Below, piece by piece: positions 8,068 through 42,370 of a stretch of DNA of 64,000 nt. A program made the position numbers and the translations under genes. The DNA is taken from positions 62,001-126,000 of the IMG/VR virus record IMGVR_UViG_3300020172_001601; one strand, 5' to 3'. The notes under the pieces are model-generated. The model did no database searches. It was not told where the DNA came from and was given only the letters and a program-made list of their open reading frames with translations. Position 1 is the first letter of the stretch. Each line of letters begins with the position of its first letter.

Positions 8068-8194
8068 TTTACAAGCCTTGAAGACCGTGGTAGAATGATT
8101 GCACAACGCTGATGAAACCGACGACGGAATCAAAAAAGAAAAGTTGTCGGAAACCTGAAGTGGACTTTACAAGGATGGAAAGCTGTGGTAGAAT
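8068..8194 (+). promoter_or_regulatory. tandem sigma70-type promoters upstream of ncRNA/tRNA array
   Basis: TTTACA-N17-TAGAAT at 8068-8096 and 8166-8194 within an imperfect ~98-bp duplication. Confidence 0.75.
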
Positions 8195-8324
8195 GATGAC
8201 ACAACGGAAATGATCCAGCAACCTTGCAGCGATGGTTGATGGGTAACAAGGGTGTGTGAGGGAGGCGCTGTGACCTCCGCACTTAATGTAAACCTGTAAA
8301 ATGGTTTCGCCCTTAAAACGATAT

Positions 8325-8415
8325 GGCGAGGTAGCTCAGTCTGTTAGAGCATTGTGAATAGGGGCCGAAAGGTCTACTAACGCAAGGGTCGGTGGTTAAA
8401 ATCCATCCCTCGCCA
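8325..8415 (+). ncRNA. tRNA-like RNA with extended GAAA-capped hairpin in place of anticodon loop
   Basis: Acceptor GGCGAGG/CCTCGCC, D arm, T arm (GGTTAAAATCC); no 7-nt anticodon loop. Confidence 0.7.
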
Positions 8416-8418
8416 CTT

Positions 8419-8487
8419 TGTAAGTCAAATGCCGTCAGGACTACATTTGCAAAACGTAACGTCTTGGCAACCATTTGTTGACTTACA
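8419..8487 (+). ncRNA. Y-RNA-like small RNA
   Basis: Terminal stem TGTAAGTC/GACTTACA, 5' GTCAAATGC, GGACTACATT, 3' ATTTGTTGAC. Confidence 0.6.
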
Positions 8488-8492
8488 TTTAT

Positions 8493-8617
8493 GGACTGTT
8501 AGCTCAGTGGCCTGTTTACAGGGAAGCCGGTTGTATTAGCCGAGAAATCGGATGATACAAACACTTCAGAGCGTCGTAGCAATACGAAGGTCGATGGTTC
8601 GATTCCATCACGGTCCA
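8493..8617 (+). ncRNA. tRNA-like RNA, GCAA tetraloop instead of anticodon, D-loop insertion
   Basis: GGACTGT/ACGGTCC acceptor; TCGTA-GCAA-TACGA; GATGG-TTCGATT-CCATC. Confidence 0.75.
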
Positions 8618-8621
8618 CTAT

Positions 8622-8799
8622 GGGGAAGTAGTAGAATCCAACTCAGAGCAGTTGGAGTGGAAAAGCAGTTTAGGCTCACGGAGCAATCCGCATGTTGATG
8701 GGGAAACCCATAAACATGAACCAAGAGGGGCGACCCTCGAACAACTGCCGAGAATACCGGGGTAACTCGGTGATGCTGGTTCGAGTCCAGCCTTCCCCA
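8622..8799 (+). ncRNA. tRNA-like RNA, GTAA tetraloop, ~110-nt multi-hairpin D-loop insertion
   Basis: GGGGAAG/CTTCCCC; CCGGG-GTAA-CTCGG; GCTGG-TTCGAGT-CCAGC. Confidence 0.75.
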
Positions 8800-8803
8800 C
8801 TAC

Positions 8804-8914
8804 GCAGCGGTAGCTCAAATAGAACCGTTTTACAGGTAGTGGCAACATTACTTGCATTTGGTAGAGCCTTCCGTAAGGAAGAGGTTGAAGGTGAGAGTCC
8901 TTCCCGCTGCACCA
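8804..8914 (+). ncRNA. tRNA-like RNA, GTAA tetraloop, D-loop insertion, encoded CCA
   Basis: GCAGCGG/CCGCTGC-ACCA; CTTCC-GTAA-GGAAG; T arm GAAGG-TGAGAGT-CCTTC. Confidence 0.75.
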
Positions 8915-8915
8915 T

Positions 8916-9047
8916 GCTGGGGTAGTAGAATTGGAATGTATGACTAGGAAGCGACATGAGGTTGTAATGACCTTTAATTCGCCCCCATGACCATACAGAG
9001 AACGCTACAGTAATGTGGAAATGCAGGTTCGAGTCCTGCCCCCGGCA
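8916..9047 (+). ncRNA. tRNA-like RNA, GTAA tetraloop, D-loop insertion
   Basis: GCTGGGG/CCCCGGC; CTACA-GTAA-TGTGG; GCAGG-TTCGAGT-CCTGC. Confidence 0.75.
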
Positions 9048-9077
9048 CTTAACATTCAACACACAGGAGATTGCACG

Positions 9078-9811: not shown

Positions 9812-10033
9812 ATGAAGACTTACATCTTCACTCTCACAGATGAAGCGCAGGCAGAACCAGCACGGTTCTTGCCGTTCATCGAGAGCGAACTTGCTGCCCA
9901 GGGTTGTAGGAATTTCCAATACCTCACAGAAGTTGGTTGCATCACAGCCGACTTCCCAGGTGAACGGACTTTCGGCCCGATCAACGGTATCGGATCAGCG
10001 GAAGAAAGCGTCGATTGCACGACGCAAGCGTAA
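9812..10033 (+). CDS. small hypothetical protein
   Basis: GGAGG RBS, 73 aa. Confidence 0.6.
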   Translation: MKTYIFTLTDEAQAEPARFLPFIESELAAQGCRNFQYLTEVGCITADFPGERTFGPINGIGSAEESVDCTTQA

Positions 10034-10035
10034 CA

Positions 10036-10202
10036 TGCCTTGGAAGGGGACCAGCATCCTCCCCAAAGTTGACTATATGTTGGTGATAGGTAGCATCTTC
10101 GGATGCCAACCCGCTTTAAGAACAAGCCAAACGTCTAGTGCCGAGTAGCTTGTTCTCCAACATGACTTCTACCTAAAAGGTGGAAGCGGCCCCTTCCAGG
10201 CA
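10036..10202 (+). ncRNA. long-hairpin RNA with central bubble (6S-like architecture?)
   Basis: TGCCTTGGAAGGGG/CCCCTTCCAGGCA closing stem, ATGTTGG/CCAACAT inner stem, hairpin in 3' bubble. Confidence 0.45.
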
Positions 10203-10208
10203 CCTTAT

Positions 10209-10338
10209 AACCCGATGGGCGTGGCGCAGCCCTAGTCAAAACGATATGCTCTACTGATTAGTAGTAGCTGGCGTATACTACGGGACACAATCAGTGGTGT
10301 ATCTACCTTAAACGGTGGGCAGCAGCCCCCATCGGGTT
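10209..10338 (+). ncRNA. structured RNA candidate
   Basis: Perfect 11-bp closing stem AACCCGATGGG/CCCATCGGGTT. Confidence 0.45.
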
Positions 10339-10343
10339 CCTTC

Positions 10344-10649
10344 ATGACACTTGCTGAATTGAAAGACAACTGGCAAAAGTACGGCGTGGATATTCAAGGT
10401 CAGATCAGGCCCTTGAAAGATTGCTTTGTGATTTGTTGGGGACCGATGCCCGATATTCCCGATGCCCTGTTGTTCGATACAGGCGGCGAACAAGGCGCAC
10501 CGGCATATGCGTTGAAGGTGGGAGAGAATGGGGAAGACCTGATTTCGGTCAACCCGGCCAATCCAGCCGAGACGACCGTGCTGGGGAAGTTGGTTCTTTT
10601 GGAAAATTCTGGAAATCGCAGTGAACCTTTTCCAGATTCGACTCTCTAG
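10344..10649 (+). CDS. hypothetical protein
   Basis: ORF 101 aa. Confidence 0.5.
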   Translation: MTLAELKDNWQKYGVDIQGQIRPLKDCFVICWGPMPDIPDALLFDTGGEQGAPAYALKVGENGEDLISVNPANPAETTVLGKLVLLENSGNRSEPFPDSTL

Positions 10650-10799
10650 TAATGTGCGGACGTGGAGGGCCGATATGTGTGGCTTTCTCTCGGCAGTCAC
10701 ATATGGTTAGCGAAGCCGGGAGTTTTTGAAAAAATAGATGACGAAAAAATTTCTTGGAAAAGTGAACCTTTTTTTGAAGTAAGTCGTCTATAATACTGT

Positions 10800-10870
10800 A
10801 GCGGGTTGGAGGAGTGGTTCCTTGCAAGGCTCATAACCTTGAGACACTGGTTCGAGTCCAGTACCCGCCA
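10800..10870 (+). tRNA. tRNA-Met(CAT), initiator-like 1:72 mismatch
   Basis: CAAGG-CTCATAA-CCTTG. Confidence 0.85.
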
Positions 10871-10893
10871 CTAGGTCGAAAGACCTTATATAT

Positions 10894-10967
10894 CGTAGGG
10901 TGGAGCAGTCTGGTAGCTCGCAAGGCTCATAACCTTGAGGCCGCAGGTTCAAATCCTGCCCCTGCCA
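10894..10967 (+). tRNA. tRNA-Met(CAT), initiator-like
   Basis: CAAGG-CTCATAA-CCTTG, C1 mismatch. Confidence 0.9.
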
Positions 10968-11045
10968 CTTTACAAGTCGAAAGACTTGTGGTAGAATCTT
11001 GAAGTTCGATAAACAAACACACGGCTCGTTGCCGTGTCAGGAGAC

Positions 11046-11183
11046 ATGACAATGTTCGTTCAAATTACCAATATCGGTCGCTGGCATAATGGGCAACAAG
11101 CCCAGCCACAGACAACGTGCGCCAAGCCCGCAGTGCGCACCGTCGTCGCCAATAAAGGTAATGAAGATACATTGCCTTCCTGA
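11046..11183 (+). CDS. putative 45-aa leader peptide
   Basis: CAGGAG RBS; MTMFVQITNIGRWH...EDTLPS*; lies between promoter (10969) and terminator. Confidence 0.55.
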   Translation: MTMFVQITNIGRWHNGQQAQPQTTCAKPAVRTVVANKGNEDTLPS

Positions 11184-11245
11184 CCGAACCATACAAGTTC
11201 GGCTCAGGATGCCTGAGCCGGACTGAAACAATATAAAGTTTCAGC

Positions 11246-11287
11246 AAACCCCGCCCAGGCAAGAAAAGCCTGGGCGGGGTTTTTTTG
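11246..11287 (+). terminator. strong intrinsic terminator/attenuator before tRNA array
   Basis: ACCCCGCCCAGGC/GCCTGGGCGGGGT followed by a T run. Confidence 0.85.
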
Positions 11288-11300
11288 TTGGATTTTTTAT

Positions 11301-11375
11301 TGCCGGGGGTTCTGTGCTGGTACGGAAACTTGACTCTGAATCAAGACGACGTAGGTTCGATTCCTACCCCGGCAG
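11301..11375 (+). tRNA. tRNA-Gln(CTG)
   Basis: CTTGA-CTCTGAA-TCAAG. Confidence 0.8.
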
Positions 11376-11439
11376 CTTCAAACTTGGGAGAATGATGATG
11401 ACAATGCACCGATATAAACGTGGAGCCATAACTGCATAT

Positions 11440-11512
11440 GGCTCCGACACCTTTAGTGGATGAGGCCCCGCCTTTTAAGCGGGTCAAGAGGGATCGTTAC
11501 CCTACGGAGCCA
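11440..11512 (+). tRNA. tRNA-Lys(TTT), atypical T loop
   Basis: CCCGC-CTTTTAA-GCGGG; T loop ATCGTTA. Confidence 0.7.
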
Positions 11513-11517
11513 CTTCT

Positions 11518-11602
11518 GCGCTCGACGCTGAATTGGTTGCAGCACCAGACTTTTAATCTGGTTTCCGCAAGGGACGTGTGGGTTCGAGTCCCACCGGGCG
11601 CA
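11518..11602 (+). tRNA. tRNA-Lys(TTT) with long variable arm
   Basis: CCAGA-CTTTTAA-TCTGG; V arm TTCC-GCAA-GGGA. Confidence 0.8.
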
Positions 11603-11627
11603 CTGTAACGAAATGAATGAACACTGA

Positions 11628-12053
11628 ATGAAACTGCAAGAATTGACGGGATTGAGTGACGCTGATCCGATTCATCGTTACTTAGGAATAGTGGATAGAT
11701 TCCTTGGGGAACATGACTGGTTTGAAACTTGTCATAAACTCCAGAAGGACGAAGTGATTGAGGCGATGTGGTTGTGCCTCGGTCATCCAGTTCAATATCC
11801 AATTGTTGAAGATTATTGTCTCGATAACTTCGAGGAATATCTTAAACAAAAAAGTGAACCTGAGATCGCCGATATTGTCTATAAGTTGAGGCGAAGGAAA
11901 GGGGAAGAAGGGATCGACAACCACGGGATTCGGGTAGTTATGATGTGGCTTATTGCCAATATCGACTATCTGAAAGAAAGATACTTGGAGGAAGGATACG
12001 GAAAACGCCATCGGAAAATAACAGCCGGTTGGTATCCAAGTATAGATGATTGA
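11628..12053 (+). CDS. hypothetical protein
   Basis: ORF 141 aa between tRNAs. Confidence 0.6.
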   Translation: MKLQELTGLSDADPIHRYLGIVDRFLGEHDWFETCHKLQKDEVIEAMWLCLGHPVQYPIVEDYCLDNFEEYLKQKSEPEIADIVYKLRRRKGEEGIDNHGIRVVMMWLIANIDYLKERYLEEGYGKRHRKITAGWYPSIDD

Positions 12054-12057
12054 ATAT

Positions 12058-12147
12058 TGTGAGATACGCTAGTTGGTAAGCGGCGAAGCTGTTAACTTCG
12101 TGCAATCCGTCTTGAACGGTACGCAGGTTCGACCCCTGCTCTCACAG
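12058..12147 (+). tRNA. tRNA-Asn(GTT) with long variable arm
   Basis: CGAAG-CTGTTAA-CTTCG; ~22-nt variable region. Confidence 0.75.
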
Positions 12148-12153
12148 CTTTCT

Positions 12154-12240
12154 ATTCCCGAACGGGAATAGAACGATCCCGAACGGGAATAATTTGATGT
12201 TTTTGGCAACAGAATAGTCAAATTATTCCCGAACGGGAAT
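12154..12240. repeat. three copies of palindrome A(T)TCCCGAACGGGAAT
   Basis: Copies at 12154, 12176, 12225. Confidence 0.85.
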
Positions 12241-12244
12241 GAAA

Positions 12245-12318
12245 CGGGGTGTGGGCTAAAGGCGAGCCGCCTGCTTTGGGAGCAGGACAACGAGTGAGTT
12301 CGATTCTCACCACCCCGA
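12245..12318 (+). tRNA. tRNA-Pro(TGG)
   Basis: CCTGC-TTTGGGA-GCAGG. Confidence 0.85.
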
Positions 12319-12325
12319 CTCGGTT

Positions 12326-12344
12326 GGTTCTTTGACAATTTGGT
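12326..12344 (+). promoter_or_regulatory. boxA-like antitermination element
   Basis: GGTTCTTTGACAATTTGGT; near-identical copy at 15556. Confidence 0.55.
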
Positions 12345-12354
12345 GGCAAAAAAT

Positions 12355-12425
12355 GGGGTCGTGGTGAAACGGGATCACGTCTGCTTTGCAAGCAGAAATT
12401 AAGGGTTCGATTCCCTTCGGCTCCA
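12355..12425 (+). tRNA. tRNA-Ala(TGC)
   Basis: TCTGC-TTTGCAA-GCAGA; G3:U70. Confidence 0.9.
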
Positions 12426-12437
12426 CTGGTTGATTGA

Positions 12438-12509
12438 CGGCGTATGTTGTAGTGGACTGCGAACTGCTCTGATAAGGCAGGAGTCCAGGTTCGATTCCTG
12501 GTACGCCGA
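12438..12509 (+). tRNA. tRNA-Ile(GAT)
   Basis: CTGCT-CTGATAA-GGCAG. Confidence 0.8.
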
Positions 12510-12515
12510 CTGAAT

Positions 12516-12583
12516 GGGGTAGCCTACGGGTAGGCTCTGTGCCTTGCAAGCACGGATATGGGGTTCAACTCCCCACTGCTCCA
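12516..12583 (+). tRNA. tRNA-Ala(TGC), reduced D arm
   Basis: CTGTGC-CTTGCAA-GCACGG; G3:U70. Confidence 0.7.
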
Positions 12584-12590
12584 CTGATAT

Positions 12591-12661
12591 AGGTGTGTGG
12601 TGTAGCGGTAGCACGCTGATCTCCAAAATCATCGGTGAGGGTTCGACTCCTTCCACACCTG
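12591..12661 (+). tRNA. tRNA-Trp(CCA)
   Basis: loop CTCCAAA, AGGTGTG/CACACCT. Confidence 0.85.
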
Positions 12662-12714
12662 CTGAGTTTATTGGTTCTCGACAACTCTTCGGAGTATAAA
12701 AACCAATACTGTAT

Positions 12715-12787
12715 TCCCTTGTAGCTCAATTGGTAGAGCGGCACGCTGTTAACGTGAAGGTTCTAGGTTCGAGTCCTAGCGAGGGAG
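12715..12787 (+). tRNA. tRNA-Asn(GTT)
   Basis: canonical cloverleaf, CTGTTAA loop. Confidence 0.92.
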
Positions 12788-12788
12788 C

Positions 12789-12862
12789 TTGGTTGAGAAA
12801 TGTAGGTTCGATTCCTACCCTGAGTAAGAGTAGCATAATATGGCCTAATGCGACTCAACCAA
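12789..12862 (+). ncRNA. circularly permuted tRNA-like RNA
   Basis: Terminal stem TTGGTTGAG/CTCAACCAA enclosing T arm BEFORE D arm. Confidence 0.65.
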
Positions 12863-12866
12863 ATAT

Positions 12867-12942
12867 TGCCGGGTATTCGGTGTTGGTATCCGTTCTCTGC
12901 CTTTGAAGCAGAAGGTCGGTGGTTCGATTCCACCCCCGGCAG
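12867..12942 (+). tRNA. tRNA-Gln(TTG)
   Basis: TCTGC-CTTTGAA-GCAGA. Confidence 0.8.
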
Positions 12943-12945
12943 CTA

Positions 12946-13192
12946 GAGAGTGTAGTGTGAATAGCCGCAGAGGTAAATTCACAAAAGTTGAAGGAAGTGC
13001 AAAGCTAAAACTGCAAGTAACAGTTGCAAAAGCTATAAAAACCGTGAGCGGCTGTAAGGGCCGACAGGCTTGGAGAAAATAACTTTGCATAGAGATCAAT
13101 GAGTAGTGTTTCGAGATAAGCGGTAGGCAGCACAGAGGCTATAGCATTTGCAACCGGAGCCTCCAGTTTAGGTTCGAGTCCTAACGCTCTCA
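12946..13192 (+). ncRNA. 247-nt tRNA-like RNA with very large D-loop insertion
   Basis: GAGAGTG/CGCTCTC acceptor; TTAGG-TTCGAGT-CCTAA; GAGGCT/AGCCTC stem with oversized loop. Confidence 0.65.
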
Positions 13193-13205
13193 CTTGTTAG
13201 TTTAC

Positions 13206-13278
13206 GGTTCCGTGGTGTAGTGGTACTGCATACCTCCCTGTCACGGAGAAGGTACGAGTTCGATCCTCGTCGGAACCG
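13206..13278 (+). tRNA. tRNA-Asp(GTC)
   Basis: CTGTCAC loop. Confidence 0.9.
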
Positions 13279-13280
13279 CT

Positions 13281-13352
13281 GTGATTGAAGCCAAACGGTG
13301 CGGCGTCTCTTTGTGAAAGAGATAATAGTGGGTTCGACTCCCATCAATCACC
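13281..13352 (+). tRNA. tRNA-His(GTG)
   Basis: TCTCT-TTGTGAA-AGAGA. Confidence 0.85.
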
Positions 13353-13364
13353 TGTTAGTTTTTT

Positions 13365-13437
13365 GGGCGTGGAGTTCGGTTGGTAGAACATCCCCCTGTC
13401 ACGGGGAAGGCTGCGGGTTCAACTCCCGTCACGCTCG
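13365..13437 (+). tRNA. tRNA-Asp(GTC)
   Basis: TCCCC-CTGTCAC-GGGGA. Confidence 0.85.
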
Positions 13438-13449
13438 CTAGTTAGTTTC

Positions 13450-13521
13450 GCCTTCGTGGTATAGTGGTATTACGCCTTCTTGGTAAGAAGGAAATCGTGA
13501 GTTCGATTCTCACCGAAGGCT
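13450..13521 (+). tRNA. tRNA-Thr(GGT)
   Basis: CCTTC-TTGGTAA-GAAGG. Confidence 0.9.
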
Positions 13522-13524
13522 CTT

Positions 13525-13597
13525 GATCTTGAAGCTCAAATGGATGAGCGACCACTTGTCTAGTGGAAGGTTGTAGGTTCGACTCCTATTGAGATCG
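13525..13597 (+). tRNA. tRNA-Asp(GTC)
   Basis: CCAC-TTGTCTA-GTGG. Confidence 0.8.
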
Positions 13598-13661
13598 CTA
13601 TGTTCATCAGGTCCGCTAACTTGGTGAACAGAAAGGTTGCGGCGAGTTTAGCGGCTCGTTT

Positions 13662-13738
13662 GAGGTTGTGTTCGTCTAGTGGTCTAGGATGCCGTCGTTG
13701 AAGACGGCGACATGGGTTCAAATCCCATACACAATCTC
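13662..13738 (+). ncRNA. Glu-like tRNA body with 6-nt anticodon loop
   Basis: CCGTC-GTTGAA-GACGG; extended acceptor GAGGTTGTGT/ACACAATCTC. Confidence 0.65.
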
Positions 13739-13753
13739 GCAACTGAATTTTAT

Positions 13754-13832
13754 GGCCGTGGAAACGAAAGCTCCGTGGTGGGGCATCAGACTGCAAATCT
13801 GACGTTAAGAGGTTCGACTCCTCCTGCGGCCT
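13754..13832 (+). tRNA. tRNA-Cys(GCA) with insertion before D arm
   Basis: TCAGA-CTGCAAA-TCTGA; U73. Confidence 0.75.
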
Positions 13833-13835
13833 CTC

Positions 13836-13906
13836 GATTCGGGTTAGTGTAACGGTAGCACGGAGCCGTCAAAGGCTCCAGAGTGGTTCGACTCCACACC
13901 CTTATC
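13836..13906 (+). ncRNA. tRNA-like RNA, short anticodon loop (TAGTGTAACGGTAGCACG family)
   Basis: GGAGCC-GTCAAA-GGCTCC; T arm present. Confidence 0.6.
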
Positions 13907-13913
13907 ACAATAT

Positions 13914-13983
13914 GTTCTGTCCTGCGGATTCAGGCATTGAGTCTACGAAACTCGACTGGAAGGTTCGACTCCTTCACGGAACA
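13914..13983 (+). tRNA. tRNA-Arg(ACG), compact non-canonical fold
   Basis: TTGAGT-CTACGAA-ACTCGA. Confidence 0.75.
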
Positions 13984-13991
13984 CTTGATAT

Positions 13992-14062
13992 GCCCGGTTG
14001 ATGAAATGGTATCGTGTCTGCATTACAAGCAGAATTCGGGGGTTCGATTCCCTCACCGGGTA
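13992..14062 (+). tRNA. tRNA-Val(TAC)
   Basis: TCTGC-ATTACAA-GCAGA. Confidence 0.85.
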
Positions 14063-14075
14063 CTGGATTGAATAT

Positions 14076-14147
14076 GGCCCATTCGTCTACTGGCTAGGAC
14101 CGCTGTTTTTCAGGCAGCAGAAGACGGATCGAAACCGTCATGGGTCA
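14076..14147 (+). tRNA. tRNA-Glu(TTC)
   Basis: GCTGT-TTTTCAG-GCAGC. Confidence 0.85.
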
Positions 14148-14149
14148 CT

Positions 14150-14229
14150 TAGTTGTTGGATAAATTAGTGTAACGGTAGCACGCCTCTCACCAAGGGGAA
14201 GATTGGTTCGATTCCAATACCAACAACTA
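14150..14229 (+). ncRNA. tRNA-like RNA with 5-nt anticodon loop
   Basis: CCTCT-CACCA-AGGGG; terminal stem TAGTTGTTGG/CCAACAACTA. Confidence 0.7.
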
Positions 14230-14301
14230 AATGAGACAAATTAGTGTAACGGTAGCACGCTCCCGTGGAGGGAGAAGATTGGTTCAACTCCAATACTCAT
14301 T
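14230..14301 (+). ncRNA. tRNA-like RNA with 5-nt anticodon loop (paralog)
   Basis: CTCCC-GTGGA-GGGAG; same D and T arms as previous. Confidence 0.7.
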
Positions 14302-14304
14302 TAC

Positions 14305-14377
14305 GCCGCTTTGAGCAGAGTGGGATTGCGCCTGTCTTGTAAACAGGAATGAGTGAGTTCGATTCTCACAGGCGGCT
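14305..14377 (+). tRNA. tRNA-Thr(TGT)
   Basis: CCTGT-CTTGTAA-ACAGG. Confidence 0.8.
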
Positions 14378-14406
14378 CTGAAACATTTAACCTTTGGAGA
14401 AATACT

Positions 14407-15154
14407 ATGGTGCGTCTTTGGCTCGAAACTGTGCGGATTTAGACCAACAGGTAGGTTACACCTGGGGCATTACTTCTCGGTGATTCAACCGGGACAAGCT
14501 GGGTGTACCGTACTGGTGGCAAACTATCATGCACCGGAGGTAAAGAATCTGGAAGTATCCGTGAACGCCTTACGGCAATACGGTGTCCAGACCATAGTGA
14601 TTCAGAAGGACGTGTTTGACGCTGAGTTGTTCTTCCGACTATTGACGCTCGCTAAAATGGGCGACTTGAGCCGGATGACACAATTCAAGTCAACAGAAGA
14701 GGACGATAGGACTGGCCAATTGTTGACCTACCCTGTTCTCATGGCGCATGATGTTGCGGGTTACTCCGAAGTCATTGTGGGCCTGGATCAGAAGCAGCAT
14801 TTGGAATATGCCAGAAAGCTGTTGAGAAAATACAACAGTGTATATGGCACGACATATCCAATCCCGATAGCGAATATCGTGGTGGGACGTGTCAAAGATT
14901 TGCGTGACCCGACGAAGAAAATGTCGAAGTCATCACCACAAGGATGTTTATTCCTTGATGATAAGGTTGATGATATTCAACAAAAGATTCGGAAAGCGAC
15001 CGCAGATGAAGAGGGCCTGAATAACTTGAAGTTTTTGTATGGGGAGTTTGTAAGAGAAACGCCTCCAACAAGTAATCAAGAACTAAAAGAAAAGCTGGCC
15101 GATGGTTTGGTGAAATGCTTTGCAAGCTGTAGTGGCACAGCATCCGGCTCTTAA
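14407..15154 (+). CDS. trpS: tryptophanyl-tRNA synthetase (compact), requiring +1 frameshift at 14416-14421
   Basis: GFRPTGRLHLGHY, YPVLMAHD, VGLDQKQHLE, KMSKS; the SD-associated ATG (14407) is out of frame with the catalytic ORF. Confidence 0.85.
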
Positions 15155-15189
15155 CCGGAAGGTTCAGGGTTCAAGTCCCTGGCGAAGCA
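15117..15189 (+). tRNA. tRNA-Lys(CTT), overlaps trpS 3' end
   Basis: TCCGG-CTCTTAA-CCGGA. Confidence 0.8.
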
Positions 15190-15194
15190 CTCTT

Positions 15195-15276
15195 GCAGGT
15201 ATGGCAGAACGGTTATGCACCTGACTCTTAATCAGGGATCGCAAGATCAACGTAGGTTCGACTCCTACTGCCTGCA
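15195..15276 (+). tRNA. tRNA-Lys(CTT) with long variable arm
   Basis: CCTGA-CTCTTAA-TCAGG; V arm GATC-GCAA-GATC. Confidence 0.85.
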
Positions 15277-15284
15277 CTATTTAC

Positions 15285-15356
15285 GGCGTGTTCGACTTCT
15301 GGTGAGGTCATCTGCCTTTCAAGCAGATTAGATGGGATCGAAACCCATACACGTCA
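15285..15356 (+). tRNA. tRNA-Glu(TTC)
   Basis: TCTGC-CTTTCAA-GCAGA. Confidence 0.85.
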
Positions 15357-15593
15357 CTTGTTGGTGGAAGAGTTCATATACAGTTGCCCAATACTATTTG
15401 CCTTCTAAGCAAATATAGGGCTACCAGGGCCATATGAAGGTCAACTGAAAAAACTGGAATATCGGCCACCCGAAACCAACAAAACAAAAACGGTTAGAGG
15501 GTTTGTACTCGACGCCGTGGATTGCCAATCTTGGGTGGGCGGCATTCCGAAGGCTGGTCTTTGACAATTTGGTAGTTAAATTAAGGCCAAGAA

Positions 15594-15728
15594 GTGCCTG
15601 TGGTGTAAGCTGGTCGGCAGCGTCGTGGAAACACGAAACACTACATTGCACGTTAATCACATTTTCCGGCAAGACCGGCTCTGTGATTAGCGTATAATGC
15701 CAATAGAGGTCGATTCCTCTCAGGCACA
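15594..15728 (+). ncRNA. expanded tRNA-like RNA
   Basis: GTGCCTG/CAGGCAC acceptor, T-like arm AGAGG-TCGATT-CCTCT, long stem GTTAATCAC/GTGATTAGC. Confidence 0.55.
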
Positions 15729-15757
15729 CTTCCCGGTCCAGAAATGGATCGGATTTT

Positions 15758-15901
15758 GGACTTGTCGTTCGTCTAAAATACGCTTCGGCGTATCTCAGGA
15801 CGCCTGCACCGCCAATGCCGTTCGGCGGTTGATGATGTGATTGGTTGGGTTGGAATACTTCTCAAGCCAGGAAGCGCAAGCTGAACTTGCACGACAAGTC
15901 T
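15758..15901 (+). ncRNA. expanded tRNA-like RNA
   Basis: GACTTGTCGT/ACGACAAGTC terminal stem, D-like stem with UUCG hairpin insert, GCAAG-CTGAA-CTTGC arm. Confidence 0.5.
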
Positions 15902-15907
15902 CTTTAT

Positions 15908-15981
15908 GGTGATCGTAGTGTAGCGGCTCTGCACGTCTCCCTGTGAAGGAGAAAGTGGCGGTTCGACCCCGCTCGATCACC
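15908..15981 (+). tRNA. tRNA-His(GTG) with encoded G-1
   Basis: TCTCC-CTGTGAA-GGAGA. Confidence 0.9.
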
Positions 15982-16087
15982 CTTGATATTTTTCAAATTG
16001 GGTCACTCTTTTAAGTCGGCATTGATCGACTACGAGATTTGGATATACTCATCTCGTCCCAAACTTCATTCAGGAAAGAGAGAAATT

Positions 16088-16894
16088 ATGGACCCAAAAT
16101 ATACCGTTGGCCAAAAGGTGCTTTTCGCCAATCAAGAAGCCATCATTCGTAAGCTCGAAGAGAGCGACGGAAAATTCAAGTATTACTGCGAAGTGGGCGG
16201 CGTCCCACTGACCATGTGGATTCCTGAAGATTCCCTTGATGTTGGAAATCCATCCGGCCCGCCATCAGTGTTCTTCAATCGAAGAATGCCACACTTGTTG
16301 ATTGTGGATAACTTCTACAAAGACCCGGATGATGTGCGAGCCTTCGCCCTGGAGCAAGAGTTCAAGCCGAACTTGAGAAACTACAAGGGCGAAAGAACTG
16401 ATGAGCGATTCCTGTGGCCATTCCTCAAAGAAGAATTTGAGCGACTATTGGGCCGTCCGATTGTTGACTGGCTGAATCAGCCTTGCAACGGATGTTTCCA
16501 GATTACTGGTTTCAATGATCCGTTGGTGTGGCACTCCGACTTGCAGAGTTACGCCGCTGCTGTATATTTGACGCCAGATGCCCCGGTAAGTGCTGGGACT
16601 AGCTTCTGGAAAGATACAAATCACGGAAGCCGTCGTCCACCAAATCACCCGCTTGAGTTCGACCGATTTGCTTCAGATGAAGCACGAGCTTTGGCGGCGA
16701 ATGAGATTTACAGCGAATACAATATCCTTCACCCGGATAATTGGGAACTGGTCGATAAAGTTGGAGCCGTATATAACCGGCTTGCAATTTGGGATGCTCA
16801 AATGATCCACTCGGCAAGTTCCTACGAAGGCATGGTAAGTGGCGAGGCTGATAAGGCCCGACTTGTCCAATTGTTCTTCTTTACCGTAAGGTAA
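16088..16894 (+). CDS. 2OG-Fe(II) oxygenase-like (DUF6445-like) protein
   Basis: IVDNFY.DPD, HSD, YAAAVYLTP, GTSF, YNRL, H, RLVQLFF. Confidence 0.75.
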   Translation: MDPKYTVGQKVLFANQEAIIRKLEESDGKFKYYCEVGGVPLTMWIPEDSLDVGNPSGPPSVFFNRRMPHLLIVDNFYKDPDDVRAFALEQEFKPNLRNYKGERTDERFLWPFLKEEFERLLGRPIVDWLNQPCNGCFQITGFNDPLVWHSDLQSYAAAVYLTPDAPVSAGTSFWKDTNHGSRRPPNHPLEFDRFASDEARALAANEIYSEYNILHPDNWELVDKVGAVYNRLAIWDAQMIHSASSYEGMVSGEADKARLVQLFFFTVR

Positions 16895-16899
16895 ACAAA

Positions 16900-17181
16900 A
16901 TGGCTTTCCGGTTGAGCAAAAAAGTCTCTCTCGAAGAGGGCGACAGGATACGAGTTTCAGGTGGTCCATACTTCCTCGCTCAATCTGGAAAAAAGATCAG
17001 CATGGGTGAGCATGGGATTGGAACATTTGCTGGGGCAGAAGAAAATGGCGAAGCGATATACGTCAAGTTTGATCGCATGTCTGCTCCAAGATTTGTCTAT
17101 ATCGGGCCTGAGCGTTTGTCGGCATCAACTGGCACAACGCTCAGGCCCCATAAGATTGTCAAGCTGCGAAAGAAGGTGTGA
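16900..17181 (+). CDS. hypothetical protein
   Basis: ORF 93 aa. Confidence 0.55.
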   Translation: MAFRLSKKVSLEEGDRIRVSGGPYFLAQSGKKISMGEHGIGTFAGAEENGEAIYVKFDRMSAPRFVYIGPERLSASTGTTLRPHKIVKLRKKV

Positions 17182-17513
17182 CCATGTGGTATATTCTTGA
17201 TGAAAATAATGATCCAGTTCCAGCCGACACATTGGTTGCAGCCCAATTCCTGGAAGATGGCAAGCGACGAACTGTTGCTTACGACGACATGCCTGATGGC
17301 AGTTTGTTGTCCACGGTCTTCTTGTGTTTAGATCACGGCATGGGCCGGTCAGACGGTCCTGTGTTGTTTGAGTCGATGTGGTTTGGTGGTCCGCACGATG
17401 GCCATCAGCGTCGGTACAAAACTTGGGACGAAGCCAAAGAAGGTCATGCCGATATGCTGGAGGCATATATGGAATATCAAAGATATAATGCGGAACAATT
17501 GGCGAAGATGTAG
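17178..17513 (+). CDS. phage hypothetical protein
   Basis: STVFLCLDH...LFESMWFGG...RRYKTWDEAKEGH. Confidence 0.65.
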   Translation: MTMWYILDENNDPVPADTLVAAQFLEDGKRRTVAYDDMPDGSLLSTVFLCLDHGMGRSDGPVLFESMWFGGPHDGHQRRYKTWDEAKEGHADMLEAYMEYQRYNAEQLAKM

Positions 17514-17517
17514 TTAT

Positions 17518-17589
17518 GCGACTATGGTGTAGGGGTTGTCACGCTTGCTTGCCATGCAAGAGGACAGGGTTCGAGTCCCTGTAGTCGCT
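17518..17589 (+). tRNA. tRNA-Gly(GCC)
   Basis: CTTGC-TTGCCAT-GCAAG. Confidence 0.85.
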
Positions 17590-17600
17590 CTGGTTTTTAT

Positions 17601-17672
17601 GCGGGTGTAGCTCAGTGGTAGAGCGTCACGTTGCCAACGTGGATGTCGTGGGTTCAAGTCCCATCACCCGCT
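17601..17672 (+). tRNA. tRNA-Gly(GCC)
   Basis: canonical cloverleaf. Confidence 0.93.
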
Positions 17673-17676
17673 CTTT

Positions 17677-17747
17677 GCAGATATGATGTAGTGGTAGCCT
17701 TCGACTTTCCCAAAGTCGCTGTGTGAGTTCGATTCTCACTATCTGCT
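17677..17747 (+). tRNA. tRNA-Gly(CCC)
   Basis: CGACT-TTCCCAA-AGTCG. Confidence 0.75.
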
Positions 17748-17758
17748 CTGTTCGATAT

Positions 17759-17898
17759 GCGTCTTTAGTGTAACTGTTAGAGCCGACCGACCTGAAAGGC
17801 CACCGGGCAACCGAGTTCTTCAGGCACGACAAGCGATAACGGCTGAAGCACGTCGCCTCTGGAGGGCAAGAGACTAGGTGCGAATCCTAGAGGACGCT
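17759..17898 (+). ncRNA. tRNA-like RNA with ~65-nt D-loop insertion and abnormal anticodon arm
   Basis: GCGTCTT/AGGACGC; TAGTGTAAC...AGCACG; CTAGG-TGCGAAT-CCTAG. Confidence 0.65.
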
Positions 17899-17914
17899 CT
17901 TATAATGAAAGTAT

Positions 17915-17986
17915 GGCCCATTCGTCTAGCGGCTAGGACGTAACCCTCTCAAGGTTAAAACAGGAGTTCGATTCTCCTATGGGTCA
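17915..17986 (+). tRNA. tRNA-Glu(CTC)
   Basis: TAACC-CTCTCAA-GGTTA. Confidence 0.9.
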
Positions 17987-17998
17987 CTGTTAATGATT

Positions 17999-18123
17999 GC
18001 CGGGTTAGCTCAATGGTAGAGCGCCAAAAACTACTCTCAGCAATATTTGGGCTTCGGCCATGCTCGTTGGGAATACATTCCACTCGGAGGAGGAGGTCGT
18101 TGGTCCGATTCCAACACCCGGCA
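17999..18123 (+). ncRNA. tRNA/Y-RNA chimera
   Basis: tRNA acceptor, D and T arms with anticodon arm replaced by GCAATATTTGGGC-TTCG-GCCATGC...GGGAATACATT. Confidence 0.7.
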
Positions 18124-18125
18124 CT

Positions 18126-19022
18126 ATGATTTGCGTTTACTTAGTAAATGAAGAACCGGCTTATATTGGGATGTTGTCCCTCAGCCTTAAAATGCTGCGA
18201 CAGCATAACCCTAATGTGCCAGTTATTGTTTACTATGTCCAAGATGGCAAAAGGGATTCACGAAAAATCCCGCTCACTGAAATAACGAGAGCCTTGAATA
18301 AGTTGCCAAACGACTATGCGTCGTTCAGTAATCTCTGCGAAGAACTCAATGTCGAGATTAGAGTTCGCAAGCCAAAACAAGAAGAAGCATATTACTCTCT
18401 GCATCGTTTGCTGTTGCAGGAGATCGAAGAAGAGACAGTGCTTCTGTTAGATGGCGACACCTTTATCTTCGGCAATATTGAGGAATTTCCCAAGATATAT
18501 GCTGGATACGATTTTGTCGCCACACCGAATTCTTGGGGCATGGTTCATCCGGTTCCTGGTTTAGACCCCAGCTTCAAGTCGTTCAACTCCGGCGTGGTGT
18601 TATGTCAGAACGGCATATTCAAGCGTTGGATGAATACAATAGGCGATTACTGTCAGAGATTATATGACGGTCGCCATCCACAGTCAGAATGGTTGTGGAG
18701 TGTAAGTTTAGAGTGTGCTGGCCGAGAAGAGTTGGCGGCGAGTTTGTTTGTTTTAGACAACGGTTTGAAGTACAGATACTTCGAGGATCAGCATGTGCAA
18801 ATGGGGAGTTACGATGGCAACACCCGCATATTGCACACGCTAAGTCCTAGTTGGCATTCGTTGTATAACGAATGCTTCAAACCACAACGGCGAATGCTTT
18901 TTAAGCCACGCTTAAAAAATGATGCAGATGCCAGTCGTGAAGCAGATGATGATCTTGATTATCCACCAGAGGCCGATGGCAATACCGCCAACGCCCAGGC
19001 CGAACAACCAAGTTTTGAATGA
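18126..19022 (+). CDS. GT-A fold glycosyltransferase (GT8-like)
   Basis: LLLDGDT DxD motif, FNSGVV, ILH. Confidence 0.75.
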   Translation: MICVYLVNEEPAYIGMLSLSLKMLRQHNPNVPVIVYYVQDGKRDSRKIPLTEITRALNKLPNDYASFSNLCEELNVEIRVRKPKQEEAYYSLHRLLLQEIEEETVLLLDGDTFIFGNIEEFPKIYAGYDFVATPNSWGMVHPVPGLDPSFKSFNSGVVLCQNGIFKRWMNTIGDYCQRLYDGRHPQSEWLWSVSLECAGREELAASLFVLDNGLKYRYFEDQHVQMGSYDGNTRILHTLSPSWHSLYNECFKPQRRMLFKPRLKNDADASREADDDLDYPPEADGNTANAQAEQPSFE

Positions 19023-19055
19023 TTTAAGTTTAGAAATGAACTTGTCCTTGTCCAT
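18912..19055 (-). CDS. 47-aa membrane protein (not in ORF track)
   Basis: GGAGG RBS; MDKDKFISKLKSFKTWLFGLGVGGIAIGLWWIIKIIICFTTGICIIF*. Confidence 0.6.
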   Translation of the reverse strand: MDKDKFISKLKSFKTWLFGLGVGGIAIGLWWIIKIIICFTTGICIIF

Positions 19056-19106
19056 GTGTACCTCCTTGATACGATAAGGTATATATGCAACAATGATGAT
19101 GATTTT

Positions 19107-19182
19107 CAGGGTGTAGCTCAGTTTGGTAGAGCGCCTGGTTCGGGACCAGGAGGTTTCGGAGGTTCAAGTCCTCTCACCCTGA
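19107..19182 (+). tRNA. tRNA-Pro(CGG)
   Basis: CCTGG-TTCGGGA-CCAGG. Confidence 0.9.
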
Positions 19183-19184
19183 CT

Positions 19185-19290
19185 TGTAGAGACAAATGCT
19201 AGTTGGGTTTACATTGGATGCTAAGGCTCGGACCTAAAAGCTACCGCAAGGTGGCTGCAAAACAACTCAGCGCAATTTGTTGTCTCTATA
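19185..19290 (+). ncRNA. Y-RNA-like small RNA
   Basis: TGTAGAGACAAATGC...GGGTTTACATT...GCAATTTGTTGTCTCTATA. Confidence 0.65.
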
Positions 19291-19291
19291 T

Positions 19292-19366
19292 CAGGGTGTA
19301 GCTCAGTTTGGCTAGAGCGCCCGGTCTGGAACCGGGAGGCCGTAGGTTCAAGTCCTACTACCCTGA
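19292..19366 (+). tRNA. tRNA-Pro(TGG), C at position 33
   Basis: CCCGG-TCTGGAA-CCGGG. Confidence 0.8.
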
Positions 19367-19369
19367 CTT

Positions 19370-19500
19370 TTGTGACAAATGCTCGTTTGGGATTACATTT
19401 GGTTCGACTCCAAGGGGCGGCTCTTTCAAAAACATGCCGCCCAACCAGCACAGGGCAACCTGGGGCTGGGGTCCGATCTCAGCACAATTTGTTGTCACAA
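19370..19500 (+). ncRNA. Y-RNA-like RNA with T-loop
   Basis: TTGTGACAAATGC...GGGATTACATT-TGGTTCGACTCCA...GCACAATTTGTTGTCACAA. Confidence 0.65.
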
Positions 19501-19524
19501 AATACACTTAAAAGAAAGATTGCT

Positions 19525-19896
19525 ATGCCAGAAAAATACAATTCGGTACTTTGGAAGGACTTTCCAACACTCGTTAAAAACGAACTGGAAAGAGCTAGGA
19601 ATAAACACCCCGGCACTCAACATAACCTGCATGAAGGTTATGCGGTCATCCTTGAAGAAGTGGACGAATTTTGGGACATAGTAAAGAGCCAAAGGCCCGA
19701 TCCGGTTCACGCCATTGAGGAATTGGTTCAAATCGCCGCTATGTGCCAAAGGACAGCGGAAGACTTGCTGTTGCGGAAAGAAAAGCGATGCAGTCGTTGC
19801 AATGTCCTATTGTCAGAAAACATTGCTAAGTATTGTGGCGATAGTGAAGAGAAAGAATCTCACAGATGGATGTCTGTTCCAGACGAGAAGACTTAA
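19525..19896 (+). CDS. MazG-like all-alpha NTP pyrophosphatase
   Basis: HEGYAVILEEVDEFWD...EELVQIAAM. Confidence 0.7.
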   Translation: MPEKYNSVLWKDFPTLVKNELERARNKHPGTQHNLHEGYAVILEEVDEFWDIVKSQRPDPVHAIEELVQIAAMCQRTAEDLLLRKEKRCSRCNVLLSENIAKYCGDSEEKESHRWMSVPDEKT

Positions 19897-19898
19897 TT

Positions 19899-19973
19899 CA
19901 GGCTGTAGCTCAGTTTGGCTAGAGCGCTTGCATGGGGTGCAAGAGGTCGGAGGTTCAAGTCCTCTCAGCCTGA
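19899..19973 (+). tRNA. tRNA-Pro(GGG)
   Basis: CTTGC-ATGGGGT-GCAAG. Confidence 0.9.
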
Positions 19974-19998
19974 CTGAATTTCGTATTTTTTTTCTTAT

Positions 19999-20176
19999 TA
20001 CGAATGCGACCATCGAGGCAACAAGAAAGGTGATGTAAGTGCAATGCTTACACTTAGCAAAAATTCTATATTAGCTGAAATGCAAAAATGCGATGTAAGA
20101 TGTGTTCGTTGTCATCGTCTTAAAACAGCGAAAGAATTTGGCTATTACAAAATGATACTTGCTTCCTTGGTATAAC
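19999..20176 (+). pseudogene. 5'-truncated HNH endonuclease remnant
   Basis: ECDHRGNKKGDVSAM...AEMQKCDVRCVRCHRLKT without upstream start. Confidence 0.6.
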
Positions 20177-20231
20177 GGTATTACGCCGCCCTCGTAAAGC
20201 GGAAATGAGTGTTCAATTCACTCAGGAAGCT
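20161..20231 (+). tRNA. tRNA-Thr(CGT)
   Basis: loop CTCGTAA; GCTTCCT/AGGAAGC. Confidence 0.8.
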
Positions 20232-20240
20232 CTGATATAT

Positions 20241-20313
20241 GACAGCGAAGCCAAACGGCTCGGCGACAGTTTCATAAGCTGTTCATTAGTGGGTTCGACT
20301 CCCACCGCTGTCA
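20241..20313 (+). tRNA. tRNA CAT (Met or Ile2)
   Basis: ACAGT-TTCATAA-GCTGT. Confidence 0.8.
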
Positions 20314-20316
20314 CTT

Positions 20317-20415
20317 GGTTCAAATGCAGGCAGGATTACATTTATCGGGCGATGAGCCGAAAGGGTCGCTGGTTCGATTCCAGCCCCAGCAGCTTAGATA
20401 GATTATGTTGAAACC
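20317..20415 (+). ncRNA. Y-RNA-like RNA with T arm
   Basis: GGTTCAAATGC..GGATTACATT...GCTGG-TTCGATT-CCAGC...TGTTGAAACC. Confidence 0.55.
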
Positions 20416-20986
20416 CACACGTTTAATTTGGCAAGACTTGGTTAGTCGGATTGTTCAATTGGGACATGATCGAGATCAAGTTGTGCATGGCTCAATGCCT
20501 GAAAGTACACTGGCTCTTTTGTCAAATGTATTGACAGGGAATGGTTTGCAAATTGGTGGATTTGTTGGCGTGTCTCATTGTTATTTGGCGTGGGCCTTGC
20601 GAGACAAAGGCTCGATATGCACTGTGGACCCCAATTTGAAACATCGTGGTATTGAAAATCCTTTCTTGGTTGCGACCAGGATGGTTTCTGAGTTTGGATT
20701 ATTGAAAAACTCAATGCTGATATGTGGATATGGCCTAAAACAAATGCGGTTGTTTGCGATCTTGGGAGTGAAATTTGATTTCATCATTTTGGATGGCAAT
20801 CATGATTTTCAGATGGTGAATGATGAGATCGAGTGCGCCACACCGATATTGAAAGACGGTGGATATTTGGTCTTGGATGACATCGACCATTGGGACGGTC
20901 CAAAAAAGGTTTACAACAGCGGTCCAGCAGGGTATAATCGGATCGAACTGGATTCGAGGGCTGGACTTTTGCAGAAAATGGGGTAA
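20405..20986 (+). CDS. class I SAM-dependent methyltransferase (Methyltransf_24-like)
   Basis: FDFIILDGNHD...LKDGGYLVLDD. Confidence 0.8.
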   Translation: MLKPTRLIWQDLVSRIVQLGHDRDQVVHGSMPESTLALLSNVLTGNGLQIGGFVGVSHCYLAWALRDKGSICTVDPNLKHRGIENPFLVATRMVSEFGLLKNSMLICGYGLKQMRLFAILGVKFDFIILDGNHDFQMVNDEIECATPILKDGGYLVLDDIDHWDGPKKVYNSGPAGYNRIELDSRAGLLQKMG

Positions 20987-21062
20987 TTCGTCAGAGCATC
21001 CTTTGAGAAGTGAAAAGAGAGTCTGCTGTACTTTTGCAGCACTTTTTTCAAAGGAGATTCAG

Positions 21063-42034: not shown

Positions 42035-42370
42035 CATGCCAAGGGCGTCTTGGATTCATCGTGTTGATGCCCGCCGATTTCATTCGGCGGCAAGAATGAT
42101 GGAAGACGATTTGGAAGGTGCCTACTTGACCTGTAGGGAAAAGTACGGTGCAGAAGTGGCTGGAGTAGTGTTGGTCACAATACTCCGACAAAAATTGAAC
42201 AACAATCAAGACCAATGGCCTCCACCGGAAGACCTTATTCGCAAGGTGAACAACTTTCTCGTGGAACACGGCTTAATGATTGATTGAATTTGTTGACTGG
42301 ATGTGGGGTGCGAACCTCACCATGACATAGTGTGTCTGGTCAAATAACTCGAAAGGCAATGGTGATTACG

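Follow-up and report, generated by a model that had tools for sequence, protein, structure and literature searches.

The window analysed here, a stretch of 64,000 nucleotides, corresponds to bases 62001-126000 of a 340,341-base virus record that is estimated to be 69% complete. It carries 49 tRNA genes, all on the + strand, together with several aminoacyl-tRNA synthetase genes and a Ro60/TROVE homolog, and the genome has two CsrA homologs outside the window; the record was therefore regarded as that of a giant phage with a large translation toolkit. At 10969-11300 on the + strand, within the tRNA array, lie a promoter, a short ORF, overlapping hairpins and an intrinsic terminator. A sequence-only reading had described this region as a leader peptide of 45 codons plus an attenuator gating the tRNA array. 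All four elements were found at the positions given there and exceed chance, so that the observation is confirmed, with corrections to the start of the ORF and to the place of the element in the array.

Anatomy of the element

The promoter at 10969-10997 (+) is of the sigma-70 type, with the −35 hexamer TTTACA, a 17-bp spacer and an extended −10 element (TGG-TAGAAT), and its spacer holds a palindrome (10972-10978 / 10983-10989) around GAAA. The pattern TTTACA-N14-TGGTAGAAT occurs 36 times forward and 2 times in reverse in the 340 kb genome at up to 1 mismatch, while a reversed-pattern control gave 0. At up to 2 mismatches there are 14 matches in the window against 0.11 expected. A weight matrix separated about 50 + strand sites cleanly from the background, and the sites in the window are at 8068, 8166, 10969, 20910, 25859, 28107, 32705 and 41048. 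These indicate that the promoter belongs to a phage-wide class, nearly all members of which are on the + strand.

A predicted 5′ UTR hairpin (P0; 11019-11037, 6-7 bp with a 5-nt loop), with compensatory changes at three pairs, lies just upstream of the Shine-Dalgarno box AGGAGA (11039-11044). The first ATG (11046), which gives the 45 codons of the sequence-only reading, is not conserved and was rejected as the start, whereas ATG 11052, 7 nt after the box, is conserved in all homologs and gives 43 codons ending with UGA at 11181-11183 (leader ORF, 11052-11183). The peptide uses 19 of the 20 amino acids, but as this number is reached by 8% of random 43-mers, a leader that samples all amino acids on purpose is only weakly supported. 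Inside the ORF are a small hairpin C (11091-11103) of unknown role, with one compensatory pair and with two tandem CAA (Gln) codons in its loop, and a hairpin E (11155-11178, 9 bp with a 6-nt loop), a possible pause or docking element.

Downstream of hairpin E, five segments share one complementary motif (CCUGA / UCAGG): segment 1 (11178-11189), which contains the last sense codon and the UGA stop, segment 2 (11197-11209), segment 3 (11212-11223), segment 4 (11246-11260) and segment 5 (11268-11282). Segments 4 and 5 are the arms of the terminator (11246-11286), which has a 15-bp stem followed by 7 U and, at −32.2 kcal/mol, is the strongest of 72 + strand candidates in the genome. A further hairpin 3 (11224-11243, 6-7 bp) lies between segments 3 and 4 and is enclosed by the antiterminator; it is 100% paired and almost invariant in sequence. 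The fold of 11000-11300 has z = −9.85 against shuffles. In Rfam 15, only tRNA reached a gathering score in the window, no other family passed the gathering or E-value thresholds, and in 10960-11310 the best non-tRNA hits scored 25-34 bits against cut-offs of 49-59, all on the terminator hairpins.

tRNA-Gln(CUG) at 11301-11376 starts 14 nt after the U-tract and is followed by about 30 more tRNA genes and several ORFs up to the next promoter at 20910. It is not the first tRNA of the array as had been supposed, since two tRNA-Met genes (10800-10968) abut the promoter on its upstream side and tRNA-like genes lie at 8325-9047. A gate at this position covers only the block downstream of 11300, not the whole array. 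The T-rich stretch TTTTTTAT before tRNA-Gln was considered as a promoter and rejected, because AT, or at least T, directly before the mature 5′ end is common to most tRNAs of the array.

Conservation of the module and of the leader ORF

A word search with the peptide followed by a profile search found 18 homologous peptides of 41-48 aa, plus one 78-aa gene call whose last 41 residues align. Their contigs and an exact-pattern scan of metagenomes gave 14 distinct DNA versions of the module in related phages (loci numbered with the prefix L below) from freshwater, lake and sediment metagenomes. Exact scans with an invariant 20-mer hit 7 metagenome contigs but returned nothing in viral contigs and nothing in bacterial and archaeal genomes, which gives no host or prophage clue, so the host is unknown. 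By blastn, the region matched a phage collection only through the tRNA-Met genes, and a search with the neighbouring 141-aa ORF gave only one near-identical contig, which starts after the leader. No second copy or antisense target was found in the phage genome by blastn-short or by a covariance model. Three leader peptides matched no Pfam or PHROG family; a large representative protein search, structure prediction and complex prediction were not used, as they would not bear on a 43-aa leader.

Each version of the module lies inside a phage tRNA array, and directly after tRNA-Met wherever the upstream flank was fetched, except in L027 and L028. Gene order is conserved in relatives. The first gene downstream is tRNA-Gln in 11 loci, tRNA-Lys in L029 and L030, tRNA-Ala in L027 and an ORF in L028. 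The promoter sits 81-83 nt upstream of the conserved ATG in the window and in 6 of 9 homologs scanned. It is displaced by a CAACA repeat insertion in L009 and is degenerate or absent in L011, L015, L027, L030 and L032; in L030, where it is absent, the element can only act on transcripts arriving from upstream.

A purine-rich box at the same spacing is present in all homologs. Only + frame 1 is open in all 10 close homologs, and an antisense or other-frame ORF was rejected because every other frame carries stops in at least one homolog. All 5 indel events within the ORF are multiples of three, while the non-coding part has indels of 1, 2 and 4 nt. Codons 1-32 showed 176 synonymous against 422 non-synonymous pairwise codon differences, with third positions only mildly more variable than first and second positions, suggesting nearly neutral evolution. 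In contrast, the last 11 codons (11151-11183) are almost invariant even at synonymous sites; hairpin E has only three substitutions in the 10 close homologs, in L016 and L021, and its apical 16 nt (11160-11175) are identical in all 14 distinct sequences. The single open frame, the 3n-only indels and the nearly neutral codons 1-32 are the pattern of an ORF kept for being translated rather than for its product, although a C-terminal GNEDTL motif is invariant at the protein level too, so that a function for the peptide cannot be excluded. The invariance of hairpin E, loop included, exceeds what the peptide plus the stem require, and is not explained by the attenuator model; it hints at a pause signal or a further partner that the model does not contain.

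Predicted alternative folds and the region behind the terminator

The five segments allow two exclusive conformations, 1:2 plus 3:4 (the antiterminator fold) and 2:3 plus 4:5 (the terminator fold). Both hairpins of the sequence-only reading are real and kept by covariation, but they are part of this larger chain, which that reading did not include; they alone would not gate the terminator, for which the 3:4 helix with the 5′ arm of the terminator is needed. On an alignment of 15 matches fitted only to the terminated structure, that structure had 97.5% of cells paired and 16 compensatory pairs, and the antiterminated structure, which was not used to build the alignment, had 91% paired and 8 compensatory pairs. 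None of 500 shuffles reached either value, and sliding the partners dropped pairing to 18-50% for the antiterminated fold and to 18-54% overall.

By helix, segment 1 pairs with segment 2 in 12 bp with one bulge (−11 to −17 kcal/mol in 15 sequences; 92% paired, 3 compensatory pairs), hairpin 2 (2:3) is 98% paired with 4 compensatory pairs, the antiterminator helix of segment 3 with 11250-11259 is 78% paired with 4 of 10 pairs compensatory, and 11 of the 15 terminator pairs show compensatory changes. In L027 and L029 the shared motif has changed in segments 3, 4 and 5 together, which is hard to explain unless segment 3 must pair with segment 4. A comparison of matched and mismatched segment 3 / segment 4 energies across homologs was not discriminating.

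The nascent RNA was folded for each sequence separately, because column-based energy accounting failed for sequences with shifted helices. The minimum-energy fold up to the terminator loop was hairpin E, 1:2 and 3:4 in 15 of 15 sequences. Forbidding pairing in a ribosome-sized footprint on the stop codon switched 12 of 15 to 2:3 with the terminator arm free, while the equilibrium fold was not flipped in L027, L028 and L030. The full-length fold keeps 1:2 beside the terminator in L027 and L028, and is 2:3 plus the terminator in the other 13 sequences. For the whole leader of the window from the predicted start, a footprint with the A site on codons 2-31 or 34-39 left the antiterminated fold, and codons 40-44 gave the terminator-permissive fold (hairpin 2). 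The first base of segment 2 lies 13-17 nt after the U of UGA in every sequence, which, going by textbook footprint sizes, is about where the leading edge of a ribosome with UGA in its A site ends.

The antiterminator is weak in this phage. Its 3:4 helix is the weakest of the family, with A.C and C.C mismatches, and its duplex energy of −11.2 kcal/mol is matched or beaten by 7 of 41 other terminator arms of the genome. Hairpin 2 is more stable than hairpin 1 by about 4 kcal/mol, so the attenuator model depends on kinetic trapping. A direct-path estimate, which is rough, puts the barrier for refolding from 1:2 to 2:3 at about 11.5 kcal/mol, slow compared with transcription of the remaining 60-100 bases, so that 1:2 should persist once formed. 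The estimated barrier for displacement of 3:4 by the terminator is only about 6 kcal/mol, against 8-11 in several relatives, and read-through may therefore be small in this phage.

A separate promoter downstream of the terminator had been named in advance as an observation that would count against the attenuator. None of the phage class lies between 10969 and 20910, generic sigma-70-like sites in 11283-21000 number 11 against 11.1 expected, and L019 and L021 have no promoter of this class for 4.6-6 kb downstream, although phage-specific promoters of an unknown class cannot be excluded. About 30 tRNA genes (11301-20232) and a few ORFs, over about 9.6 kb, therefore appear to depend on passage through this terminator.

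In four metatranscriptome runs (X15 to X18) from four studies, RNA contigs differing from the window by 0-2 letters cover the leader at 11019-11184 (X18), 11037-11180 (X16), 11037-11182 (X17) and 11039-11214 (X15). None covers 9900-10800 or 11215-11300. The ORF at 11628-12053 behind the terminator is not covered in three of the four, whereas in X15 it is covered at a depth similar to the leader. Contigs cannot establish RNA ends, strand or level, tRNAs are not expected in such libraries, and the stop of three contigs within two bases of the stop codon is left unexplained. The pattern fits an abundant short leader RNA with little read-through.

A proposed ribosome-dependent attenuator and its alternatives

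Taken together, these observations are best explained, with moderate confidence, by a ribosome-dependent transcription attenuator inside the tRNA array. In this model, transcripts start at 10969 or arrive from the upstream promoters at 8068 and 8166. If no ribosome covers segment 1 when segment 2 emerges, 1:2 forms, segment 3 is free to pair with segment 4, the terminator cannot form, and RNA polymerase runs on into tRNA-Gln and the roughly 30 tRNA genes behind it. If a ribosome keeps pace and reaches the last five codons or the UGA stop, it covers segment 1 but not segment 2, 2:3 and 4:5 form, and transcription stops at about 11286. The output would be inversely related to how well the leader is translated, since a stall at almost any of the first 39 codons, or failed initiation, would give read-through, making the element a general sensor of translational capacity rather than of one amino acid.

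The interpretation in the sequence-only reading, ribosome-stalling attenuation that turns on spare tRNAs when translation is impaired, is thus supported by comparative and thermodynamic evidence, including its polarity. What the analysis itself establishes is the anatomy, its conservation, the covariation and the predicted folds, whereas translation of the ORF by ribosomes, variation in read-through and its response to translation stress are inferred, as no experiment or end-mapped RNA data exist and read-through was not measured. The accompanying remark that this would be a second translation-stress sensor besides a trpS frameshift was not examined. By our comparison, 37 of the 43 leader codons can be read by tRNAs that ARAGORN finds in the window, so the circuit could close as a negative feedback on the phage's own tRNA supply, which is again an inference.

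Among the alternatives, an RNA switch set by a trans-acting factor rather than, or in addition to, the ribosome is unlikely but remains possible alongside the ribosome model. One of the two phage CsrA homologs, RNA polymerase itself or a tRNA might dock on hairpin E, or the terminated leader might work in trans as a small RNA with the invariant block as its seed. The identity of the apical 16 nt, although several synonymous changes compatible with pairing are possible, the accumulation of leader RNA in four metatranscriptomes, and UCAGGA motifs at the Shine-Dalgarno box and at the top of hairpin 2 are in line with this. However, no Rfam family, including T-box and known leaders, matches, no antisense target or second copy exists in the phage genome, and a factor-only switch does not explain the frame conservation and the stop-codon geometry.

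About as unlikely is an ordinary transcription unit for a small phage protein, with a constitutive terminator and the tRNAs expressed from promoters of another class or by basal leak. The invariant GNEDTL motif, the very strong terminator and the RNA contigs that cover the ORF but not the region behind it in 3 of 4 runs would suit such a gene. Against it are the near-neutral codons 1-32, the synonymous-site invariance of the conserved part, which points to RNA-level rather than protein-level constraint, the lack of a matching protein family, the lack of a promoter in L030 and the absence of a recognisable downstream promoter. A plain gene also does not need a five-segment chain with the stop codon inside segment 1, nor a covarying 3:4 helix.

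A classical glutamine-specific attenuator is not supported and was rejected as the main model. There are 5 Gln in 43 residues (about 4% of random 43-mers of the phage proteome reach this), the tandem CAA CAA is conserved in the close homologs, and tRNA-Gln most often follows. However, the leader has no run of regulatory codons, only two tandem Gln codons about 85 nt before segment 1; these are lost in the homologous peptides P0008-P0011, P0014, P0017 and P0018, the first gene downstream varies, the predicted switch responds to a stall at almost any codon, and the tandem codons are CAA while the adjacent tRNA in the window reads CAG. A constitutive processive antitermination element such as the put RNAs of phage HK022 is very unlikely, since, although invariant hairpins lie directly behind an early-type promoter and before a strong terminator, it does not explain the conserved ORF, the 3n indels, the embedded stop codon or the mutually exclusive helices, and no curated RNA family is similar.

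The leader-peptide attenuators of amino-acid operons (E. coli trpL, hisL, leuL, thrL type) likewise have a short translated ORF with its own Shine-Dalgarno box, overlapping alternative hairpins, an intrinsic terminator directly before the regulated genes and a decision set by the position of the ribosome. In the viral element there are five segments instead of four, so that an absent or stalled ribosome would give read-through and only a ribosome on the last codons or the stop would give termination, and the regulated genes are tRNAs. The logic is not that of codon-run attenuators but that of the translation-inhibitor-sensing leader attenuators of resistance genes, such as bmrCD of B. subtilis (PMC4191407) and mef/mel (PMC4335068), in which a ribosome stalled in a small upstream ORF favours an antiterminator and switches on genes that relieve the translation problem; in bmrCD-like leaders any failure to finish the small ORF opens the terminator. 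Those respond to particular drugs and control pumps or ribosome-protection genes, whereas the cargo here is a tRNA array and no arrest motif or drug link is known. The E. coli toiL-topAI uORF (PMC12121999), in a cellular toxin-antitoxin transcript, reportedly senses several classes of ribosome-targeting antibiotics as a broad sensor of translation stress; its mechanism was not compared in detail. T-box riboswitches also couple tRNA status to an antiterminator/terminator choice, but sense uncharged tRNA directly, without translation, and no T-box features are present here.

Phage tRNA arrays are usually discussed as codon-usage adaptation or as replacements for host tRNAs degraded during infection, and how their expression is controlled is largely unknown. 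The only long tRNA array whose regulation has been worked out, the supernumerary trn operon of Anabaena sp. PCC 7120, is silent by default and induced when translation is impaired (PMC8421152), through direct repeats at the promoter bound by the repressor TrcR (PMC8421152, PMC10272220), and the text of PMC8421152 mentions no attenuation, leader or terminator. The promoter spacer described here holds a palindrome rather than direct repeats; TrcR was not searched for. A more far-reaching reading, which is tentative, is that the phage carries its own homeostat for translational capacity, in which a leader ORF that samples 19 of the 20 amino acids meters ribosome progress, opening transcription of more than 30 phage tRNA genes when decoding falters, for example after host tRNA cleavage or shut-off, and closing again once the phage tRNAs restore decoding. 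In this view the same array would hold a second translation-coupled device, a mini-ORF at 11393-11463 that runs into tRNA-Lys through a hairpin sequestering the tRNA's 5′ acceptor strand, and hairpin E would dock a further, unknown factor.

In the literature searched, we found no leader-peptide attenuator in front of tRNA genes or in a phage. The element would thus be the first case we could find of this classical mechanism controlling tRNA genes, and would provide a compact element of about 280 nt, driven by a sigma-70-type promoter, that can be tested in standard reporter systems. It also makes the question of when and why phage tRNAs are needed directly testable, and it would show that a virus monitors translation directly and adjusts its own tRNA supply.

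Translation-related genes and unusual tRNA genes

The phage encodes a Ro60/TROVE-vWA protein (42332-44077 in the window), a short TrpRS-like ORF (14480-15154), a large class I synthetase (46672-49233), a MetRS (59147-60796), and two CsrA homologs (C1:137669-137824 and 144841-145002, in genome coordinates). Within the region 8300-9050 of the window, Rfam detected tRNA-like genes of 91 bases (8325-8415) and 132 bases (8916-9047) that were missed by ARAGORN, and the region between them also translates on the opposite strand into tRNA-arm-like motifs. These may be long-arm or insert-bearing tRNAs (Leu, Ser or Tyr are otherwise missing from the array). ARAGORN also reported tRNAs with two-base anticodons at 13664-13738 and 13836-13908 in the window, and a tRNA with the anticodon UUA, a stop-codon reader, at 661-752 in L012, a relative. 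These could be odd or suppressor tRNAs.

None of the 49 tRNA genes in the window encodes its CCA end. Most of them (about 35 of 49) are preceded by AT at positions -2/-1, nearly all of the rest are preceded by T at -1, and most are followed by T, which suggests shared processing signals.

Sequence features around the leader

Both tRNA-Met genes are followed directly by a GAAA-tetraloop hairpin (10873-10886 and 10972-10989). The second hairpin is a perfect 7-4-7 palindrome that fills the spacer of the leader promoter, and it is compensated in the related locus L016 and partly kept in L021. It could be an operator or a tRNA 3′ processing element. In one relative (L009, positions 2884-2990, and L010), a CAACA microsatellite of about 60 bases is inserted between the promoter and the leader hairpin P0, thereby moving the promoter from about -82 to -146. 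The conserved GUUGGA after the terminator U-tract (11287-11292) is complementary to ACCAAUA in codons 6-8 of the leader (11069-11076), and a long-range helix between the two was proposed by RNAalifold, though no compensatory change supports it. RNA contigs from three independent metatranscriptomes end within two bases of the stop codon of the leader (11180-11184). Although contigs cannot prove an RNA end, a processing or decay boundary at the base of hairpin E is possible.

A second conserved mini-ORF preceding tRNA-Lys(UUU)

A second conserved mini-ORF was found between tRNA-Gln and tRNA-Lys(UUU), at 11393-11463 in the window and in the related loci L009, L011, L012, L016, L018, L019, L021, L030, and L032. 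The mini-ORF has a Shine-Dalgarno box, several ATG codons, and a conserved Arg-Tyr-Lys (CGA TAT AAA), and it runs into the 5′ end of the tRNA-Lys gene. The bases just upstream of the tRNA pair with the 5′ acceptor strand of the tRNA itself (-15.6 kcal/mol in the window), and this pairing is kept in 8 of 11 loci even though the acceptor sequences differ. The arrangement may represent translation-dependent control of tRNA folding or processing.
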